From: Tetramitus jugosus
Taxonomy: Eukaryota; Protista; Heterolobosea
DNA: 64,000 nucleotides
Direction of reading: 5' to 3'
Assembly (NCBI GenBank): GCA_937625935.1
Contig: OW569360.1
Span: 186,001-250,000 of the forward strand
How positions within the stretch are numbered: position 1 is the stretch's first letter; each line of letters opens with the position of its first letter. The notes beneath the pieces were generated by a model. That model was not told the origin of the DNA. It did not search any database and was given only the letters and a program-made list of their open reading frames with translations. A program made the translations under genes and the position numbers. This document shows positions 2,862-34,006 of the stretch, in pieces.

Positions 2862-3620
2862 ATGGACCGAAATATAATAACGAGCTCTGGAGCGGCTCAT
2901 GTAGATGCTTATCTCGAATATCGAATGTAAATTACTTTACCAATTAATGTTTATGTTCATCATTTCTGTTCATTAATACGTGTTATCATCATTGATTGAT
3001 TTTGATCATAATTCAGGATTGTAGGAAACAGAGATGGTGGTCATCTCTTGCCTGAACACGAGTATGAAAAGTTGAGGAAAGAGTTCTATGAGAACAGAGA
3101 GAAGAACAACTTCCATTCTGTGGATTATTCTTGGCTAGAAGGAGCACCCAGACCTCGACCTCGTTCAGAAAAGAACAAGCAGTTGAAGAATCAAAGCTCT
3201 ATGAGATTGTACTGTACAGATATTACTCCATTGGGTCTCTTAAACAAGTATGTACGACTATTCATGTGATTGCATCATCAACAACAAATCTTTGACAACA
3301 ACTGCAGAGAACCGTTCTCATCTCTCCCCGAGCCAACTCTGACAGCGAAGAGAGGAACCAGTAGAATGTTGTCAACCCCATCTACATCAAATAGGAACCA
3401 GAATACCACGAGTAATCGTCCAAGCAGAACTGCTGAACATTGTCCACAACCATTGTCCAGAACACAGACAACACCAGACCTGTCTGAAGTGGAGAAACTC
3501 ACTCAAATGCTTAGTGATACCTCTCTGAGTGCAGCTAAAAAGTATGGCATCAAGAAGGAGCTTCAAATGATCAAAGCCAGAGAAATACAACAAAAGAGAA
3601 GGCTCTTGTCGTCCGAATAA
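2862..3620 (+). CDS. FAM221-like N-terminal domain protein, 3 exons: 2862-2926, 3017-3247, 3308-3620
   Basis: Spliced N-terminus GAAHVDAYLEYRMIVGNRDGGHLLPEHEYEKLR resembles the FAM221A N-terminus as recalled. Introns 2927-3016 and 3248-3307 (GT..CAG) join the ORF-track fragments in frame. Confidence 0.65.
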
Positions 3621-3682
3621 AAAAAACTTCAAGCGTTTTGCTGAACAATTCTCGTTTCCAAGAAAAAAAAACGCGAGAGAAC

Positions 3683-14307: not shown

Positions 14308-16885
14308 TTATGATCGGTGGCTGGGTGGCGTTCTTGATCCCTCGCGACGACTGTCTGCATATCGATCATACGGATGCTGTCTGTAGGGTGGTTGTTGATC
14401 ATATCTTCTTCTACCGCCGCCGTAGCTACGGTTATACGATGGTGGAGGTACACCTTGATAACGCCCATAGTTTGGTTCTGGTTGTAGTGGTTGATCTCTT
14501 CTGGAGTCAGGGTACGAAGGGTGATGAGGAGGTGCACCTCCACTATAGTAGGGTTCAGCTCTTCTACCATATCGATCACCACCGCCATGTTGTTCTTCAT
14601 TGTAATACTCTGGCTGACCGCCACTACCATAAGGAGGATAAGGTGCATTGGAACCGTAGTGTGAATCACGTGGTGGATACTGTGGTGGATTGTAATCTCC
14701 ATATCTGCCGCCTCCCTCATCTCTTCTTGCTCTCTTGTGTGGTCTATAGTACTCTCCATCATCTGCTGGATAGGATTGAGGTGGTTCATATGCACCACCG
14801 TGACCATATCGATGTGGCTCATCTGACTCGTATCGAGGTCGAGTATGTGGTGGATGCTGCTGCTGCTGCTGTTGTTGTGAATCCAGGTGCGGTTGCTGGT
14901 AGGGCTTCTTTGGTACAATACGATCCTCATCTCTCAACCGCTTCACTTCAAACTTCTTGAGGAACATGGCCGTGTTGATGTCTCTCACTTGAATCACCCG
15001 AGCTCTTTCCTCTCGACTCATATTGTCGAACAATGAAAGCTTTTGTTCAATGCTTTCCTTTTGCTGATCTGCAAAATACTTGGCTTGCTGTTCCACTTGT
15101 TCCATAAAGTCATCAGGCATGTCAGACAGTGCAATGAATGGAACTTTGGTGGAGAAGAGTGGACCGACATGTTGAAGCATCTTTGTGAGATAGGATTGAT
15201 CAATGCCTCGGAATCCAACACACACGGCATAGACTTCTGAACTGCTGCTCTTTGTGGTGACTGGTTTCGTAATGGTCACACTCTCAAACACACAATTCAA
15301 CAAGTACAGCATGGAGATGCTAATAGGTTCCAACAGTGTAAGGAATTTGATGATAAATGAACCACCAGTGCCCAGTATGCCCAGAGCTGCTGTAATCTCT
15401 GCAAATTTGAGAGAGGCAAGAATGTTTTCTTGATCGTAGGGATCATCAGACACTTTGACACCACCGTCTGCTGTTACAATCATTACTGGATGATTCTTAT
15501 CCAACTTGCTTTGATCACTTGTTGTCTTGCTAGTAGTAGCACACTTTTCAACAATCGTGTTCCACATGTGTTCAATATTTGTGCTGTTGGTAATGTCTCC
15601 AGTCTTGTCCACTCCGTACAACCAATGACTCTCCGTCTCTCGTACCATTCTCATATCATACAATGAATTTTCATCAGAGACGGACAATGAATTGGCAAAC
15701 CATTGCCAATCAATACTAGTACCATCACTCTTCTTACCATCACTACTACCATTACTACTACTACTACCACTACTGCTGCTGCTATTATACTCTGTCTTGA
15801 GAAAATGATTGAGAGCACAAATGAAACCACCTGGTGCTTCACACAAGTGCAATGAATTCAATTGTATTTTTTGTTGTTGCTGTGGTTCAGTTGTAGTAGT
15901 AGTAGTAGTAGCAGCAGCAGCATTATTGTTGTTGATGTGTGATGAATTTTGAAGAATGTGAGTCATCATGTGTGGAGTCGTCTTCAAGAATTCAAACATT
16001 TTGATCCATCCTCTCGTACACATCTCTGCATTGCACGCAATCTTCAATTCTTTGGGCACAGAGGCCACAGGATTCATCATGAACGCATGTCGATTCCACG
16101 CATCAAAATTCACTCCTTCGAATCGTGCCTTACTCTGATTCAAATCATTTCTAATTCTCAATAATTTCTCCTTGATCAACTCATCTCTCTTATTCACAAC
16201 AGTAGTAGTAGCAGTAGTAGCAGTAGCAGTACTATTATCGACATTGTTTGTTTCATCATCAATCTCATTACTTGTAGTAGTAGTAGCAGTAGTAGTAGCA
16301 GAAGTAGCAGAAGTAGTAGCAGGTGGTGAAGAAGCAAAGAATCGATCCAATGATGGCAGAGAGTATTCATTGTTGTTGTGAAAAGTGAATTTACATTTCA
16401 AGAGTTGCTCAGAGGAAGAAGCATCCTCTTCTGTCCATATGGGCTCTACATTGAAATTGGATCGAATACCTGATGCTGATGATGATGATGATGGATGATC
16501 ACGTGATGATTGATATTGTCTGGATTGACCAAGTGTAAGCCATTGAGCAGACAATGTAGTGGATTGAATGTGTGTATTGTTGACAAAGTGAAAGCATTGT
16601 TGTGCGTCCTTTTGTGTCATGAATCTGTTGTCAATAGCAACAACCTGTTGTGTGAGATCACCAGATCAACGCTAAACAAAAACATAAAAATTCGAACAGA
16701 ACTGTGACATGTACATACTCTACAACACATGAAGTATAGTTACTGTTGACAGTTGGTGCGGAACTGTCCATGAAAATTCGATGAATGATACCACATGATG
16801 ACACCAGTTCATACACTTGGCTCTCTGTTGTATTCTTTTGAAGATTAGAGATCTTGACTAGATGTCTACCCTTGTCTCTGCTCAT
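14308..16885 (-). CDS. CMTR2: Cap2-type FtsJ-fold 2'-O-ribose methyltransferase with N-terminal RRM, 2 exons (intron 16718-16625)
   Basis: AEMCTRGWIKMFE, LHLCEAPGGFICALNHFL, TADGG, FIIKF and SSEVY give the K-D-K-E tetrad. Upstream exon encodes an RRM-like region (VKISNL...CVVEF) joined by a GTATGT..CAG intron. P/Y/G/R-rich tail. Confidence 0.85.
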
Positions 16886-16969
16886 TGATGAACTCTTGTG
16901 AATGTTGATCAATCGTCACGCACTTGATAATTGTATCGATCAACAATTGTGTGTGTTTTTTTTTTCAGT

Positions 16970-16985
16970 GAGGTCGTTTTTTTTG
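16970..16985 (+). repeat. Left terminal inverted repeat GAGGTCGTTTTTTTTG
   Basis: Exact reverse complement of 20755-20770. Confidence 0.93.
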
Positions 16986-17117
16986 TCACCACAACACATC
17001 ACAAAAAAAAGAAAAATTTGTTCTCACACATCCACCCACCAAAATATTTGAGACAAAATTGCTTCTACCACAAAGGTTGTTTCATTTTGCACAAATAAAA
17101 AAAAAATATACTTTATT

Positions 17118-18239
17118 TCAATTGTACAGTTTTTCACAGTCAATAACAGTGAATTCTGTTATAACATTGAAATCCTTGCTCCTCTCAACACATATCTCAT
17201 GCTCTCCTTCAACGTAGGACAATTTTACATCACCATCAACTATATCCTTTGCTTCAACCACGAGTTCATCAAATGAACTACACACAACTTTCCACTTTTT
17301 CTCATCATATCTTAGAAACAGACATTTCTTTTCCATTTCATTATCCACCTCACCGCAATCTCTCTTGATCAACTTTGTACAAAGTCCAATTAACGCTGCA
17401 TATTCCTTTGTGACATTCATCATTTCTCTTTGATTGCTGGCATAATTGATGTATGATTTGGCCTGTTCCGATGCAATATAGTTGTTTCTAACGATCGATT
17501 CTTCATATCTTTTGTTTCTATTCAATGACTGACTTGAGTCTATAATGTCGTCTGACAATTGTGATGCATCAGTGGCCATAGTCGTTGTACTATAACACAA
17601 CACATTTTCATCTTCGAGCAACATTACAAAGGCTTCGTCCAGCGAAGATTCTAATTCACAGTGCGCTCTCCATTGATCATGTGACCATGGTATGATCTCA
17701 CCCTCACCTTCCACTCCCAATGCATCCTTCAGGGTGTTTAACTCTTTGACTGGCTTTGGTAATTTCGTTGTTTCCTTACCACGTCCAAATATAGACTTCA
17801 ACCAAACAGAGTCAATTTCAGGCGGGAACAGAATATCCTGGATTTTGTTCTCTTTCGTCTTTGTACCTCTCCAGTTCAGAGTAGCGAGTGCAACGGCTTT
17901 GTTGTTGATCATCAATACAATTTCATCCCCAACATCAACATCATCTGTTTCATTGTTGATCGTCTTTCTCCATGAAGAAAAGGCAGATGATATCTTTTTC
18001 TTGTAATCACTGGCGTCTCTCTCAGGATATCCTTTTTTTATCATCTCTTCGCCAATTCGAAACGTATGATCCTTCACAACGGCTCTAATAGCGGCTTCAA
18101 CTTCCGAGTTGGTGTAATTGGGTCCTCTTTTTCTTTTTTCTTCTTGTGGAGACTGGATCGTTGATTGTCTTTTCGAAGAACTCTTAGATGGTGTGTTGTT
18201 CTTCTCCTTCGCTTTCTCCTTGGTCTTCCCTTTGGTCAT
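17118..18239 (-). CDS. Transposon ORF2: Myb/SANT-like DNA-binding protein with possible C-terminal PB1-like domain
   Basis: Basic NLS then KRKRGPNYTNSEVEAAIRAV, typical of Harbinger Myb-like partners; lies within the TIRs and overlaps the transposase 3' end by 56 nt. Confidence 0.65.
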   Translation of the reverse strand: MTKGKTKEKAKEKNNTPSKSSSKRQSTIQSPQEEKRKRGPNYTNSEVEAAIRAVVKDHTFRIGEEMIKKGYPERDASDYKKKISSAFSSWRKTINNETDDVDVGDEIVLMINNKAVALATLNWRGTKTKENKIQDILFPPEIDSVWLKSIFGRGKETTKLPKPVKELNTLKDALGVEGEGEIIPWSHDQWRAHCELESSLDEAFVMLLEDENVLCYSTTTMATDASQLSDDIIDSSQSLNRNKRYEESIVRNNYIASEQAKSYINYASNQREMMNVTKEYAALIGLCTKLIKRDCGEVDNEMEKKCLFLRYDEKKWKVVCSSFDELVVEAKDIVDGDVKLSYVEGEHEICVERSKDFNVITEFTVIDCEKLYN

Positions 18240-19563
18240 CTGTTGTTGTTATAGTTGTTAGAAGAGGTGTTGTTGTTGTTTGATTTTCACAAACTCGGGA
18301 GAACTTTTGTCGGAGGTGCTCATCAAAATTCGAAACAGATTCGGGGGTCCGAATCGGATGTTGTTGTAAAAATCGATTCGTCAGACAGGCACAAACCATT
18401 GCTACAACTGGTAATAGTGCGATATTATAGCGGAACCGGGATGCTAAAATCTCATATCGCTTGATAAATCCGATTGTGCACTCGACAATGACGCGTTCAA
18501 CTTTTTGGAAATGTTGAAGGGCATCGTCCTCCTTCAAATCATCAGGTGTCACCAATGACAACCCAAGATTCTTTGAGCGAAATCCTCCATCAGCACAAAG
18601 TTTTTTTCCTTCTGGCAACAGAGATATAACGTTGGATAATGAAAAGATTAGTTGATCATTGGATGCGCCACGATAACCAACAGACATGTGAATAATATTA
18701 CCACATCGGTCAACAGTGATTTGACCAATGATGGCATGACCCTTATCTTTCCGATAATACCGACTTTGGTCATACCTTGTTCGACCAATCTTGAAATGTG
18801 AGTGATCCACAGATCCCACTGTGTCAAGAAGGGGATGCGGACTGTTCCAACTCTGTGGAATTGTAATGTTGTCCTTTTCAGTAACAAAAATAGCCATGAG
18901 TACATGACGGAAATCGTTACTTATAGCTGCTTTGGAGTAACCAAAGTTAACTTCAATGACTGAAAGTTTACAAGATTGCCTAAGGATCATTAGGCAAGCT
19001 AGTAGTCGATTGGCAGGTGATAGTCTGTTAGTATATGGTTTCTTTCTCTTGGATTGAATGGACTGTGATAAAAAATGAGCATTTTTTGGTGCCATTATTT
19101 TCTCTCTTGTTCGAGTCAGAAGGTCCAAGAAGTCCTGGTGAGACATGCCAGTGTATGGAACAAATTGCTCTGGTGTTTTGCTCAAAATGGCATAGAAGTC
19201 ATTTCGATTGATTGATTTCTTTCTTTTTCTTAAGAAGGAATTACCTTTACCGATTCCTGGTAATGTTGCCTTTTGAAATAACTTCTTTACTTTATTGTTT
19301 GGATGCGGTAGTTGAATTAGAAGCGGTGGGGGTGATCTTGATAGAATGTTAAGAATGTAATTGGTATTTTTTGGTAGTGTTTGTTTGTGTTGTTGTAGTT
19401 GTTGAAGTATCTGTCGTAGATGTTTCATATCTTGTGATAATAAGTGAAGTTGTGATGATATAATTGTGTCAATATGAATGGGTTCGATGAATAAACAGTT
19501 TGATGTGAGTGGTGGTGGTGGTATGTGTATGAGTATCTTCTCCCATGTTGTTATGCTCTTCAT
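18184..19563 (-). CDS. PIF/Harbinger-type DDE transposase (HTH + DDE_Tnp_4)
   Basis: FVPYTGMSHQDF, HTH (LSPANRLLACLMILRQ..FGYSKAAIS), GSVDHSH (D), GASNDQ, CADGGF (D), RVIVECTIGFIKR (E); no stops. Confidence 0.92.
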   Translation of the reverse strand: MKSITTWEKILIHIPPPPLTSNCLFIEPIHIDTIISSQLHLLSQDMKHLRQILQQLQQHKQTLPKNTNYILNILSRSPPPLLIQLPHPNNKVKKLFQKATLPGIGKGNSFLRKRKKSINRNDFYAILSKTPEQFVPYTGMSHQDFLDLLTRTREKIMAPKNAHFLSQSIQSKRKKPYTNRLSPANRLLACLMILRQSCKLSVIEVNFGYSKAAISNDFRHVLMAIFVTEKDNITIPQSWNSPHPLLDTVGSVDHSHFKIGRTRYDQSRYYRKDKGHAIIGQITVDRCGNIIHMSVGYRGASNDQLIFSLSNVISLLPEGKKLCADGGFRSKNLGLSLVTPDDLKEDDALQHFQKVERVIVECTIGFIKRYEILASRFRYNIALLPVVAMVCACLTNRFLQQHPIRTPESVSNFDEHLRQKFSRVCENQTTTTPLLTTITTTDDQREDQGESEGEEQHTI

Positions 19564-19636
19564 TTTTTGATGGTCTTAATTTTTAGATTCTCCGTTGGAC
19601 GATCCAATTTCTCCGATTTCCGAGCAAAATCACAAA

Positions 19637-20281
19637 ATGTCTGCACCTGCAGTGCCACAACCTGTTCATAACAACAATGGTGAGAACAGAGAAAGATCAG
19701 ATGAGGAGATCAACATGATCAACCTCATCTGCGAACAGTTTATTACAAACATGCAGAGGTATTGTAATATAGGTGTTGGTATTACTCTGTATTCAGAGTC
19801 TCCAGCATTTTATAATGTTAGCTGGTCAACGGCAGGTCAGAACCGTCAACACAAATACCCACTTCTTAAGTTGCGTGATATTGCCCCACTTGATTATGAC
19901 GAAGATACCAACATCATCGTTTCGGTGGAAAGCGCAAAAAAATTTTTGACCAGCGCACTGAGTGATGGGGCCTCATCCAGCCGCGACTTGAGAATTTTTA
20001 TGGCGGTTAAATTTTTGGAAAACAACGGTTACGAACCATCGAACTTTATCGATTTGAATCGATATTGGGCACTGTGTCAATATCATTCGTTTTGTTCTCA
20101 TATCAATCAGTTGATCCTTGGTTGTTCGATTGGTAATCCAGGTACGTTTTTTTTTACTAAAGTGTCAGCATCTGTTTATGTCAAGTATTATCGAGAAAGG
20201 GTCGTTGGTGATGATGGTTCCTTCGTTGACCCTGTGATAAGAGAGATTGTGTTGATGATCAAGAATCATAATAATATATAA
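19637..20281 (+). CDS. Transposon-borne orphan ORF3 (about 214 aa), unknown function
   Basis: Open, complex-composition ORF inside the TIRs, divergent from the transposase; stop overlaps AATAAA. Confidence 0.7.
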   Translation: MSAPAVPQPVHNNNGENRERSDEEINMINLICEQFITNMQRYCNIGVGITLYSESPAFYNVSWSTAGQNRQHKYPLLKLRDIAPLDYDEDTNIIVSVESAKKFLTSALSDGASSSRDLRIFMAVKFLENNGYEPSNFIDLNRYWALCQYHSFCSHINQLILGCSIGNPGTFFFTKVSASVYVKYYRERVVGDDGSFVDPVIREIVLMIKNHNNI

Positions 20282-20754
20282 TAAAGTTTCTGTTTATTGT
20301 TTAAAAATTTTGGTAGTCCAACAATGTTCATGATGGAGGAACGAATGCCTCGCTTGTTGTCGATGATATCTTTGTTTCAACAATGACACCCGTGATTTCT
20401 TCTCCAATTGATTGACTAATTCTTTTCTTGAAGAGATTTTGGTGTTGATGTTGATGATTCTTGTTGTTGTTGACAATAATCACCAATTTCAAAAACCGTT
20501 TTGGAGGAAATGGTTGGTGTTGTATGGAATGATGATGGTGATGATGAAAAGCAATCATGGTCATAGTTGCTTTTTTTGGATCATGTTGTTGGAGGCTGAA
20601 CGATGAGGATTTTCATATTGTGAATCATGATATGTAATATGTGATGATTGTGTGCTGTTTGTTTGTGTTTGGTTGTGTTTGGGTTGGTGAAAATGAAACG
20701 GTGTTTGGGTGTGACTCAAATGCCACACAAATTTTTAATTTTGTGTTGCCACAT

Positions 20755-20770
20755 CAAAAAAAACGACCTC
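20755..20770 (-). repeat. Right terminal inverted repeat CAAAAAAAACGACCTC
   Basis: Exact reverse complement of 16970-16985. Confidence 0.93.
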
Positions 20771-20883
20771 AGTGCGATGATTCAATCGAAAGAAGAATTG
20801 GGGGAGATTCTGCGCTCCGCTTCTCTTCTTTGTGCACAACTGCACAACACAAACAACAACAACCATCACCAAGCATCACAAGC

Positions 20884-22431
20884 ATGTCTCTACTATCAGA
20901 TGAGAAGCTGTGTACAAAGTTTGATCAAACATTTGACTTTTATACAGCCAATGAACACGATCACAAAAAATTGTTCAACTTTTTGTATTACTTGCACAAG
21001 AGATTAAACTTGTGCCATCCATCTCGTTCCTCTATTGAATCTCATGTTCATCAATGCATGGATCTCATATCACAAAAGAAGAGTGACTATGTGATATACA
21101 AGTACTTGAGAGATAAGCAGAAGCAGCACAGGAAGGGTGATGTGAGTGATGCGAGTCTCAGACAATTTGAAAACACGTCCTACCAGAGAACCATTACTCA
21201 AAAAGTGGATGAACTACAGAATGCAATCAACATGTTTCAACTCTTTCAACAACCGGCACAACAATCAGATGATGATACAACTACTACTACTACTACTACT
21301 AGTAATAATGATAATGATAATAACGATAATAATAATGATAACAATACTATGATGATCAACAACAACAACAACAAGTACACCATTCCATCAACACTTGACA
21401 TTGGAACAGAGAGATTAGAATTCCTGGATGCTCTCAAGGAGAGATTCTCTGTACAAACAGTCCGTGGTATCAACATTGACGTTGGTTTTTGTCATTATGA
21501 TGAGCGATTTGTAGAGAATGTAAAGGATGAACGATTCCAATTGTACGATGGTAAGACTATACCATTCAGTGATGATTCATTTGATTTGATTACACTCTTC
21601 TCAGTGATTCATCACATTCCATCAGATGAATTCAAACTGGTGTGTCAAGAGATTGCTCGAGTGTGCAGAGGATACCTGTACCTGAAGGATGTAGACTTGG
21701 TGGATCAAGTAGCAGAGATCATGTTCCGTATTCAACACTACGTATTCGAAGGAGTGTTCCTCCCAGGTGATTGTTCCTACATGAACTGTGAAGTGACAAA
21801 GGAGGCAACACTGGAGGCACTAAAGGACGCTGGATTCAAAGTGGTTCACGTCAAGAATTCTTCCAACTTTAACAATACGTATTTTGCACTGTTGCAATCC
21901 CCAACAAATCATGATGTGTTGCCTGCTGCTCCTGTTGCTATTGTTTCCAGCAGCAGCAGTCATGTGAGACCTTCTCATCGCGGTGGCAGAGGCAAGTTCC
22001 ACTATAGCAATAACAGATACAATAACGATAATAGGGACGACAATAGATATGACAATAGGTGGAATGATGATGGTGGTGGTGGTGATGATGATACGCGTCA
22101 CTTCCATGTTGTGGTCAACAAAAAGAGCAGAGGATACAACTCTCGATACAACTCTTCTTATTCTCATCATCATCAGAGAGATGATCGTGATAGGAACTAT
22201 GATGGTCCCAGGAGACATGACAGTGGAAGATATCGCTCCAGTGGTGATCATCAAGATAGAGACAACAGAAGACGAAGAAGAAGAAGTCAGAGCCCACCAT
22301 CATCATCATCATCTCACAGATCACAACCTTCACAACAACCTGTTGATGAGGAAGAGATGGCCAAGAGAGCAAGAAGAGCTGAACGATTTGGTGCCCCAAC
22401 TACACCACAAACAAGCAACAACAACAATTAA
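20884..22431 (+). CDS. Class I SAM-dependent methyltransferase with R/D-rich tail and Tho1/MOS11-like C-terminal motif
   Basis: LDIGTE and YDGKTIPFSDDSFDLITLFSVIHHI motifs; C-terminal KRARRAERFG. First ATG outside the transposon is at 20884. Confidence 0.75.
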   Translation: MSLLSDEKLCTKFDQTFDFYTANEHDHKKLFNFLYYLHKRLNLCHPSRSSIESHVHQCMDLISQKKSDYVIYKYLRDKQKQHRKGDVSDASLRQFENTSYQRTITQKVDELQNAINMFQLFQQPAQQSDDDTTTTTTTTSNNDNDNNDNNNDNNTMMINNNNNKYTIPSTLDIGTERLEFLDALKERFSVQTVRGINIDVGFCHYDERFVENVKDERFQLYDGKTIPFSDDSFDLITLFSVIHHIPSDEFKLVCQEIARVCRGYLYLKDVDLVDQVAEIMFRIQHYVFEGVFLPGDCSYMNCEVTKEATLEALKDAGFKVVHVKNSSNFNNTYFALLQSPTNHDVLPAAPVAIVSSSSSHVRPSHRGGRGKFHYSNNRYNNDNRDDNRYDNRWNDDGGGGDDDTRHFHVVVNKKSRGYNSRYNSSYSHHHQRDDRDRNYDGPRRHDSGRYRSSGDHQDRDNRRRRRRSQSPPSSSSSHRSQPSQQPVDEEEMAKRARRAERFGAPTTPQTSNNNN

Positions 22432-32887: not shown

Positions 32888-34006
32888 GAGGGTCAACCCC
32901 CCGAAATAAACTTGACCAAACCATGTCCCCGATTTAACCCCGAATTTTTTCACTGCCTGAACCACTTTTTGTATTGCTTCAAACTTGGTTTTACAAACAA
33001 TACCACCACCATAAGCAAAACCAATAATACAATGACCCTGTCATATCGTGACATTCGTGAAGCCGTCGAGCAAAAAGTTCGCAAAGCAACGGTTGATATT
33101 TTGGTCAGCTACCTCCTTCGCCATTCGGTTCATCTCGGGGGTCATGAGCAACCGAAACACTTTCTTCGGCGTACAGTGTATCTACAACTATACAAGGATG
33201 CGTACCATATTGGTTTCTCCGAGTTATCGAAGGCAACAAAAGGTTGGTACAAGGTCAACCATAAAACTCTTGACAGAAACATCAAAAAGGTAAGAAAAGG
33301 ACTGAACACCTGGGGTAGGAGTCAAGTCACTCCTGGGACTATTTCTGACTGGGAAAAGGCAACAAAGAAAGTCAAAATTCCGAGAGCGGTCGGAGGGACC
33401 ACTCTTTGGATCGATTCGACAGATTGTCAAATTGAGAGAAGAGGAGAGGCACTCAAGAGGCATCCCTTGTATAGTGGTAAACTAAAGAAGGTAGCTCTGC
33501 GAAGAATGGTCATCACTGATGGCAGACGGAGAATTAGATTCTTCTCGGATGGATACACACCAAAGCTGTATGATTCACACTGGGCGAAGGTAAACAAGAG
33601 AATTCTTGATGAAAACTTCAGTGGTGGTGTGTTTATTGGTGACACACACTTCCAGAGGTTCGAACATGAGACTGGATTGAAGTGCTACACACCAATCACG
33701 ATTCCTGTTGGTCGCACTAAGAAGGACAATCCCCTCAGTCAAGGTCAAGAAGAATATAATGCCAAACAGAGAAGTGTGAGAGCCATTTGTGAAGCCACCT
33801 TCGGGGAAATTAAAACAAAGTTCAAGAGTCTCACCACAGCATGGGCTGAAAGTGAACACCAACAAGATTACCTGTTTTCCATTGCTTGTGGAATACACAA
33901 CGTTGAGCTCTAACGGGAAGCTCAGTTGTTGTTGTTGTATGAAAAGAATTGAAAAGATGTTTTGTGTAGGTGGTTTTCCCGCTTTTTTTTTAGGGGGCTG
34001 ACCCTC
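32888..34006 (+). mobile_element. Compact single-ORF IS5/Harbinger-like insertion element, 1,119 bp
   Basis: Imperfect TIRs GAGGGTCAaCCCCC and GAGGGTCAgCCCCC (13/14); AAC on both flanks (32885-32887 and 34007-34009); internal transposase. Confidence 0.85.
33032..33913 (+). CDS. IS5/DDE_Tnp_4-type transposase (about 293 aa)
   Basis: WIDSTD (D), YSGKLK, LYDSH, IGDTHF (D), YNAKQRSVRAICEATFGEIK (E) and ACGIHN. Confidence 0.85.
   Translation: MTLSYRDIREAVEQKVRKATVDILVSYLLRHSVHLGGHEQPKHFLRRTVYLQLYKDAYHIGFSELSKATKGWYKVNHKTLDRNIKKVRKGLNTWGRSQVTPGTISDWEKATKKVKIPRAVGGTTLWIDSTDCQIERRGEALKRHPLYSGKLKKVALRRMVITDGRRRIRFFSDGYTPKLYDSHWAKVNKRILDENFSGGVFIGDTHFQRFEHETGLKCYTPITIPVGRTKKDNPLSQGQEEYNAKQRSVRAICEATFGEIKTKFKSLTTAWAESEHQQDYLFSIACGIHNVEL

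Follow-up and report, generated by a model that had tools for sequence, protein, structure and literature searches.

Elements of the PIF/Harbinger superfamily (PHIS) generally make target-site duplications of 0-3 bp (Han et al. 2015, PMC4482050; Kojima 2025, PMC12730594). Among them, the Pangu group is defined by a 5'-ANT-3' duplication and has terminal inverted repeats (TIRs) of 11-40 bp that usually start with AG or GG, an average length of ~3.5 kb and two open reading frames (ORFs), the second without known motifs; two potentially active Pangu families have been counted, and the ANT target is shared by bacterial IS5 (Han et al. 2015, PMC4482050). Pangu has been equated with Harbinger2 of Repbase, and three-gene PHIS elements carrying TET/JBP, named PHISTA, have been described from rust fungi (Kojima 2025, PMC12730594). 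Here we analysed a PHIS element in a 64,000-nt stretch of the genome of the heterolobosean protist Tetramitus jugosus (GenBank assembly GCA_937625935.1, contig OW569360.1, positions 186,001 to 250,000 of the forward strand; hereafter the window). To our knowledge, the second protein of Pangu elements is uncharacterised and no Pangu element has been biochemically tested; few elements of this type look intact. The locus at 16967-20773 is quite likely a complete, apparently self-sufficient cut-and-paste element of the superfamily, with a Pangu-type ANT duplication, a partner gene (ORF1) and a third gene (ORF3).

The element is 3.8 kb long (3,807 nt with both flanking AGT triplets) and bounded by a perfect 16-nt TIR, GAGGTCGTTTTTTTTG, whose right-hand copy is the exact reverse complement of the left. 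The chance expectation of such a pair in a 5.8-kb stretch is ~0.007, and the inverted repeat extends imperfectly to ~50 nt (43 nt at 74%). Exact copies of the terminus occur in the 26.35-Mb genome only at the ends of paralogous copies, and since the same termini bound these copies elsewhere, we regard the boundaries as real. AGT stands directly outside both TIRs, within a wider frame, C-AGT-G, that the preliminary description of this DNA had missed; its account of perfect repeats, of AGT at both ends and of three uninterrupted long ORFs in a structurally intact copy was otherwise borne out. Two subterminal boxes, CAACACA and AAATTTGT, lie equidistant from each end, and both are preserved in the nearest paralogue, on contig C39. 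They are candidate protein-binding sites. Much of the right non-coding region (query positions 3334-3673, window ~20300-20639) could not be aligned with the C39 copy, so that its small ORFs are not conserved; a fourth small ORF at 20328-20564 was dropped for this reason.

The transposase matches DDE_Tnp_4 over the whole profile (positions 1-158 of 158), with further weak matches to HTH_Tnp_4 and DDE_Tnp_1 in Pfam. Its catalytic triad, D253 (18805-18807), D325 (18589-18591) and E361 (18481-18483), is invariant in an alignment with seven relatives. No IS5-family model of NCBIfam matched it at E<=1, and a sequence search of the PDB with the transposase found nothing. A protein alignable over the DDE catalytic region, encoded between TIRs with a 3-bp duplication, fits the placement in PHIS that had been proposed earlier. 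All three ORFs are under purifying selection. Compared with the C39 copy, the ratios of nonsynonymous to synonymous substitution rates (dN/dS) range from 0.07 to 0.13 (ORF1, 0.066; transposase, 0.115; ORF3, 0.133). Compared with homologous elements in two Logan read-assemblies (L066 and L068), the proportion of nonsynonymous differences (pN) was 0.16-0.24 with synonymous sites saturated, ORF3 reaching 0.17 against L066. Because selection is seen against both sets of relatives, all three ORFs are real genes; the extra gene content beyond the transposase, suspected before, is thus genuine and constrained.

Table 1. Features of the element, in window coordinates
Feature	Position	Strand	Remarks
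Left target-site duplication AGT	16967-16969		preceded by C at 16966; matches 20771-20773
Left TIR GAGGTCGTTTTTTTTG	16970-16985	+	perfect over 16 nt; imperfect pairing on to ~17008-17021
Left subterminal boxes CAACACA and AAATTTGT	16992-17021	+	16992-16998 and 17014-17021; mirrored at right end; kept in C39 copy
ORF1, 373 aa, probable partner protein	17118-18239	-	linkage to DDE_Tnp_4 genes, AlphaFold2 model, dN/dS
Candidate 55-nt GT..AG intron (transposase-to-ORF1 fusion)	18240-18294	-	frame arithmetic; not conserved
Transposase, 459 aa, DDE_Tnp_4	18184-19563	-	Pfam PF13359, 7.1e-17; intact DDE triad
73-bp divergent spacer, transposase ATG to ORF3 ATG	19564-19636		presumed shared promoter; layout also in L066
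ORF3, 214 aa from first ATG	19637-20281	+	conserved third gene; open frame listed from 19595/19637
Right non-coding region with mirrored boxes	20282-20754		ACAAATTT (20727-20734) and TGTGTTG (20742-20748)
Right TIR	20755-20770	-	reverse complement of 16970-16985
Right target-site duplication AGT	20771-20773		followed by G at 20774

The group assignment depends on the target site. We tabulated the flanking triplets, reading into the terminus, at eight independent insertion sites of the element group, one of them (L067, a related element) outside the genome. The two ends of the window copy gave AGT and its reverse complement ACT, those of the C39 copy ATT and AAT; the C40 and C11 flanks read AAT, the C41 and L067 flanks ATT, and a further terminus at C39:85752 ACT. 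A-N-T thus abuts the terminus at seven of the eight sites (8.8% expected, P ~3e-7). Tabulating duplications at other copies, as had been proposed, therefore upheld the triplet rule everywhere except at C35, which reads AGG. C stands at position -4 in six of the eight termini, so that the usual context is C-ANT-G. Matching flanks were paired in three complete elements, the window copy (AGT/AGT), the C39 copy (ATT/ATT) and its neighbour on that contig, element B (ATT/ATT), the latter two sharing one ATT. With flanks of AGT, ATT, AAT and ACT, the TWA duplication (TAA/TTA) of canonical PIF/Harbinger elements was not seen; no clean duplication could be read in two more distant relatives (L072 and L073). 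The non-TWA duplication pointed out in the preliminary description, and its mention of an ANT duplication in Pangu, agree with the definition of that group (Han et al. 2015, PMC4482050). Judged by its target-site duplication, the element belongs with Pangu (Harbinger2 in Repbase).

The ends of the window copy can be parsed in another way, with CAGTG taken as a 5-bp duplication and the repeat (AGGTCG...) shortened to 15 nt, and both parses predict the same empty site, TTTTTTCAGTGCGATG. If the duplication were C-A-N-T-G and the true termini AGGTCG...CGACCT, the element would represent a new target-site type within PHIS and would not be Pangu-like. Both complete insertions fit (CAGTG/CAGTG in the window, CATTG/CATTG on C39), the TIR would acquire the AG start usual for Pangu, the C11 terminus reads caatA-AGGTCG, as if the base adjoining AGG were derived from the target, and the same ambiguity was met for NuwaII (Han et al. 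2015, PMC4482050). However, the G adjoining AGG varies less than the outer C, being present at seven of the eight termini in the genome and at both ends of L067, whereas the outer C occurs in only six of eight; it is kept at C41 (a-ATT-G) and C35 (t-AGG-G) although the outer base there is not C. The second argument for 3 bp comes from a sister element in the same window (32888-34006, 1,119 bp) with a 3-bp duplication, AAC, and termini of the form GAGGGTCAACC... (GAGGGTCAACCCCCC... and ...GGGGGCTGACCCTC, 36 nt at 72%). Its flanks, cAAC-G...C-AACc, make 5 bp impossible, since G...C is part of the repeat there. Given also that PHIS duplications generally measure 0-3 bp, we consider the 5-bp parse unlikely and favour the 3-bp, Pangu-type duplication.

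Contig C39 carries a stack of such elements. At its right end the C39 copy passes, across a single ATT, into element B (CGACCTC-ATT-GAGGGTTTTTCTTTTT; C39:83558-85090, 1,533 bp). Element B has its own perfect 16-nt termini (GAGGGTTTTTCTTTTT) and contains a fragment resembling ORF1 (40%) and a gene resembling ORF3 (44%), with no transposase. It ends in turn ...AAAAACCCTC-ATT-GAGGTTGTTTGATTTT, where GAGGTTGTTTGATTTT belongs to a third element as its decayed left end, so that three elements are joined through shared ATT triplets. Since an insertion gives C-ANT-(G...C)-ANT-G, the C-ANT-G site would be rebuilt at both junctions, and we infer from this one locus that the stack arose by repeated use of the rebuilt target. 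Beyond the decayed GAGGTTGTTTGATTTT, the stack (C39:83555-85770; L075:156-2370) ends with another terminus, a-ACT-GAGGTTTTCG.

ORF1 had no match in Pfam, in NCBIfam or in a word-index protein search; a language-model atlas gave no usable match, and a PDB sequence search with its profile returned nothing. A search of 1.84 billion representatives with a profile built from ORF1 and a 31%-identical homologue retrieved only 26 proteins. Outside the genome, six places were examined (L066, L067, L068/L069, L072, L073 and L074), and in every one the homologue adjoins a DDE_Tnp_4 gene. The two genes stand in tandem, as in the window copy, in L066, L068/L069 and L074, and on opposite strands, divergently, in L067, L072 and L073; in L073 both are enclosed by perfect 80-nt inverted repeats. 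The L067 contig (3,640 bp) begins ATT-GAGGTTTTTTTATTT, ends AAATAAAAAAACCTC-A and lacks ORF3; judged by these ends, contig and element coincide, and the terminus is a related one. Because its homologues adjoin DDE_Tnp_4 genes everywhere examined, three times on the opposite strand, we regard ORF1 as the partner protein of the element. The related element L072 (L072:302-2302, JGI metagenome 3300038658) encodes a 666-aa transposase, divergently paired with its ORF1-family protein, in which a faint Peptidase_C48 (Ulp1-like) signal in the N-terminal 250 residues precedes DDE_Tnp_4. Within the genome, an uninterrupted 302-aa frame at C28:471174-471863 is 29-34% identical to ORF1 and possibly represents a further subfamily or a domesticated copy.

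An AlphaFold2 model of ORF1, calculated from a 29-sequence alignment (mean predicted local distance difference test score, pLDDT, 78), resolved four well-defined parts: an N-terminal domain (44-99) with helices at 44-57, 63-68 and 76-99, a beta domain (106-192), a helix of ~70 residues (225-294) and a beta-grasp domain (300-373). The last of these aligned with PB1 and CIDE-N structures in VIA-align at Z scores of 10.4 (7v6e, DREP3), 10.1 (5xpb) and 9.7 (2g4s, the PB1 domain of NBR1, and 2o2v), with root-mean-square deviations of ~2 A over 68-72 residues and a Foldseek E value of 3.6e-3; generic ubiquitin-like folds scored close behind (Z ~8). PB1 and CIDE-N domains are homotypic association modules, so that ORF1 plausibly self-associates through this end. 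The N-terminal domain, by our reading of the model and of the sequence pattern, has the look of a Myb/trihelix-like three-helix unit.

The frames of transposase and ORF1 share 56 nt, an overlap not easily reconciled with two separate genes in a eukaryote. A 55-nt GT..AG intron between them would instead yield a single 796-aa transposase with a C-terminal DNA-binding/PB1-like extension. The arithmetic works, as the upstream exon ends on a codon boundary at 18295 and the ATG at 18239 follows in frame. Short introns are also used in this genome, since the neighbouring FtsJ-type methyltransferase gene needs one of ~70 nt (GTACAT...AACAG, window 16621-16715, minus strand) between an RRM-like first exon and its main ORF. 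But the arrangement is not shared by the relatives. The splice donor GT is absent in L066, the transposase stop of L068/L069 overlaps the ORF1 ATG as TAATG, and the C39 equivalent of the 55-nt stretch measures only 28 nt. Moreover, the initiator methionine of ORF1 is kept in all relatives, and in L067, L072 and L073 the homologue stands apart as a gene of its own on the opposite strand. A fused gene is hence distinctly unlikely, more so than the 5-bp duplication, and ORF1 is probably a separate partner protein rather than a fused domain.

ORF3 had no match in Pfam, NCBIfam or the language-model atlas, and a metagenome scan for relatives was empty. The word-index search returned P0005 and P0006, two proteins encoded by related elements; P0005, of L066, occupies the same position and shares 69% amino acid identity with ORF3. 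ORF3 lies head-to-head with the transposase gene, at a distance of 73 bp, in L066 and in both the window and the C39 copies, and the spacer presumably serves both genes as a promoter. In addition to the 44% homologue in element B, C1:6120-6875 encodes a full-length one (252 aa, 25% identity, pairwise E 4e-20). L067, L072 and L073, distant relatives with two genes, have no ORF3. Since ORF3 persists in L066 as well as in the window and C39 copies, has homologues at 44% and 25% and is absent from these distant relatives, it is, on the pattern of its occurrence, an old component of one sub-lineage and not a recent capture of a host gene. Profile comparison revealed no relation between ORF3 and the ORF1 family, and an AlphaFold2 model from a three-sequence alignment was unusable (pLDDT 34). 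The homologue on C1 stands head-to-head, 63 bp apart, with an intact single-copy ORF of 777 aa (C1:6120-9269; L076:2618-5773) that has no Pfam match and no paralogue in the genome; the pair lies near the contig end beside an ORF1 fragment and may represent a further mobile element or two domesticated genes.

In the mechanism we propose, the DDE_Tnp_4 transposase would cut at the GAGGTCG...CGACCTC termini through D253, D325 and E361 and integrate the element at A-N-T through a cut staggered by 3 bp, with a preference for C-ANT-G, a site that each insertion would rebuild at both junctions. An extended palindromic target preference is known for PIF. The Myb-like partner of Harbinger is said, from work by Sinzelle et al. 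in 2008, to bind subterminal sites and to recruit the transposase, and ORF1 may be its functional counterpart as a separate protein. Its three-helix domain would bind the subterminal boxes, and its long helix and PB1/CIDE-N-like end would self-associate, bringing both ends and the transposase together. ORF3 would act as an accessory third gene, specific to the lineage and maintained by selection. Of this scheme, we infer the binding of DNA, the oligomerisation, any requirement for ORF1 and ORF3 and mobility at the present day. A bolder version, to which we give tentative weight at most, holds that the element is a three-component system composed of the transposase, a polymerising DNA-binding partner of an undescribed family, built of a three-helix domain, a beta domain, a coiled coil and a PB1/CIDE-N-like end, and an essential ORF3, in which the rebuilt target leads to head-to-tail stacking.

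Compared with the described groups, the element comes closest to Pangu, with which it shares a DDE_Tnp_4-type transposase, the ANT duplication, a TIR length (16 nt) within the range of 11-40, a comparable size (3.8 kb; Pangu average ~3.5 kb) and, in ORF1, a second ORF in which no motif is recognised. It differs in the GA start of its TIR under the 3-bp parse, the C...G target context, the tandem arrangement of transposase and ORF1 with overlapping ends and the conserved ORF3, which adds a third ORF to the two of Pangu. The host range also differs, as the hosts listed for Pangu exclude such protists (Han et al. 2015, PMC4482050). NuwaII (C-TNA-G) has a similar palindromic C...G frame around a 3-bp duplication, with the same ambiguity between 3 and 5 bp, but its core is T-N-A rather than A-N-T, and its second ORF contains Myb/SANT, for which the ORF1 family has no profile match. 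Canonical PIF/Harbinger elements likewise combine a DDE transposase with a separate partner protein, encoded by a second ORF with a Myb/SANT or MADF domain; here, by contrast, the duplication is non-TWA, the partner belongs to a rare family with a PB1/CIDE-N-like end, and a third gene is present. PHISTA, too, is a three-gene PHIS element including a non-Myb third protein, yet it makes a TA duplication and carries a TET/JBP dioxygenase, whereas ORF3 has no detectable enzyme domain. The IS5 family has a related DDE fold, seen here as the weak DDE_Tnp_1 match, and the ANT target; unlike it, the present element is eukaryotic and multi-gene, and matches no IS5 model of NCBIfam at the threshold given above. 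With two-ORF Pangu (PMC4482050) and three-gene PHISTA (PMC12730594) known, the extra gene content is not unprecedented. The element is not a new class of mobile element; ORF1 and ORF3 are two rare, undescribed transposon-linked protein families.

Several points weigh against a complete, Pangu-type element with a DNA-binding partner. The placement in Pangu is made by the type of duplication, and the window copy by itself fits a 3-bp and a 5-bp duplication equally well. Under the 3-bp parse the TIR opens with GA, unlike the usual AG or GG of Pangu; the 5-bp parse would give AG. No Myb/SANT profile, nor any other Pfam model, matches any of the 29 sequences of the ORF1 family, and the sole fold match of the N-terminal domain, to the DNA-binding domain of Sap1 (Z 8.9), lies within the noise for helical models. 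ORF3 has neither a usable model nor recognised, named relatives. No transposition event is documented, and genome searches revealed no empty site, no near-identical second copy and no derivatives of the miniature inverted-repeat transposable element (MITE) type.

The copy nevertheless offers a full set of parts (perfect ends with mirrored boxes, an intact transposase, a well-modelled partner and a conserved third gene) for asking how PHIS transposases choose ANT over TWA, and it could reveal the role of a non-Myb partner protein. It also documents the Pangu-type group in a lineage of protists for which hardly any transposon families have been curated.

The window copy is the only intact one in the genome. 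The nearest paralogue (C39:79801-83554) is 81% identical and broken, with a 12-residue deletion in the transposase, an ORF1 split in two and a frameshifted ORF3, and all other matches (on C40, C4, C11, C35, C41, C23, C26, C16, C1 and C37) are fragmentary and interrupted by deletions and stops. With 141 nt of one end and 151 nt of the other as queries, only the known copies came up. Terminus matches at up to two mismatches numbered 75, versus 95 for a reversed control, revealing no amplification beyond these copies; since the matches are no commoner than in the control, there is no MITE family with the termini of the window copy. One intact copy, a broken 81% paralogue, fragments otherwise and no MITEs together make this, by the record left in the genome, an old, low-copy family. 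The window copy could be autonomous, but there is no sign of recent movement or current activity. The preliminary description had suggested a young, possibly active family; these findings do not support that suggestion, and the copy count by terminus searches, which it had proposed, yielded no near-identical second copy and exact termini only at the ends of known paralogues. Several decayed fragments lie within a few kb of contig ends (C11:4.6-6.3 kb, C40:4.2-4.8 kb, C35:6.2-6.6 kb, C1:5.6-6.9 kb and C4:683-685 kb of 687 kb), a clustering that suggests accumulation in subtelomeres.

The element occupies the 5' spacer of a divergent pair of host genes, an FtsJ-type methyltransferase on the left (minus strand, ATG at 16885) and a class-I methyltransferase on the right (ATG at 20884), which retain 84 bp and 113 bp of native upstream sequence, respectively. 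Although this location, the decay of every copy but one and the strong purifying selection on all three ORFs could be expected if the three genes formed an immobile locus, or a domesticated one, retained because it serves the host, we consider this very improbable. Domesticated genes derived from Harbinger need not retain perfect 16-nt termini and a perfect duplication, as this copy does; the low dN/dS derives from comparisons between transposon lineages, where it is expected; and homologous elements are repeat-bounded units in other assemblies, the L067 contig ending exactly at its termini.

The sister element at 32888-34006 is likewise flanked by a divergent pair of host genes, encoding an alpha/beta hydrolase and an RCC1-repeat protein; it contains a single DDE_Tnp_4 ORF of 333 aa (32912-33913, 2e-15) and no partner gene. 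A different DDE_Tnp_4 protein, 27% identical to the transposase described here, was found at four further loci of the genome (C7:562473-563123, C30:433096-433746, C35:308410-309060 and C16:400574-401215). Three of them have near-identical scores and open frames of 365 aa, and the fourth is slightly weaker with a frame of 319 aa; the set probably represents a younger PHIS family in the same genome.

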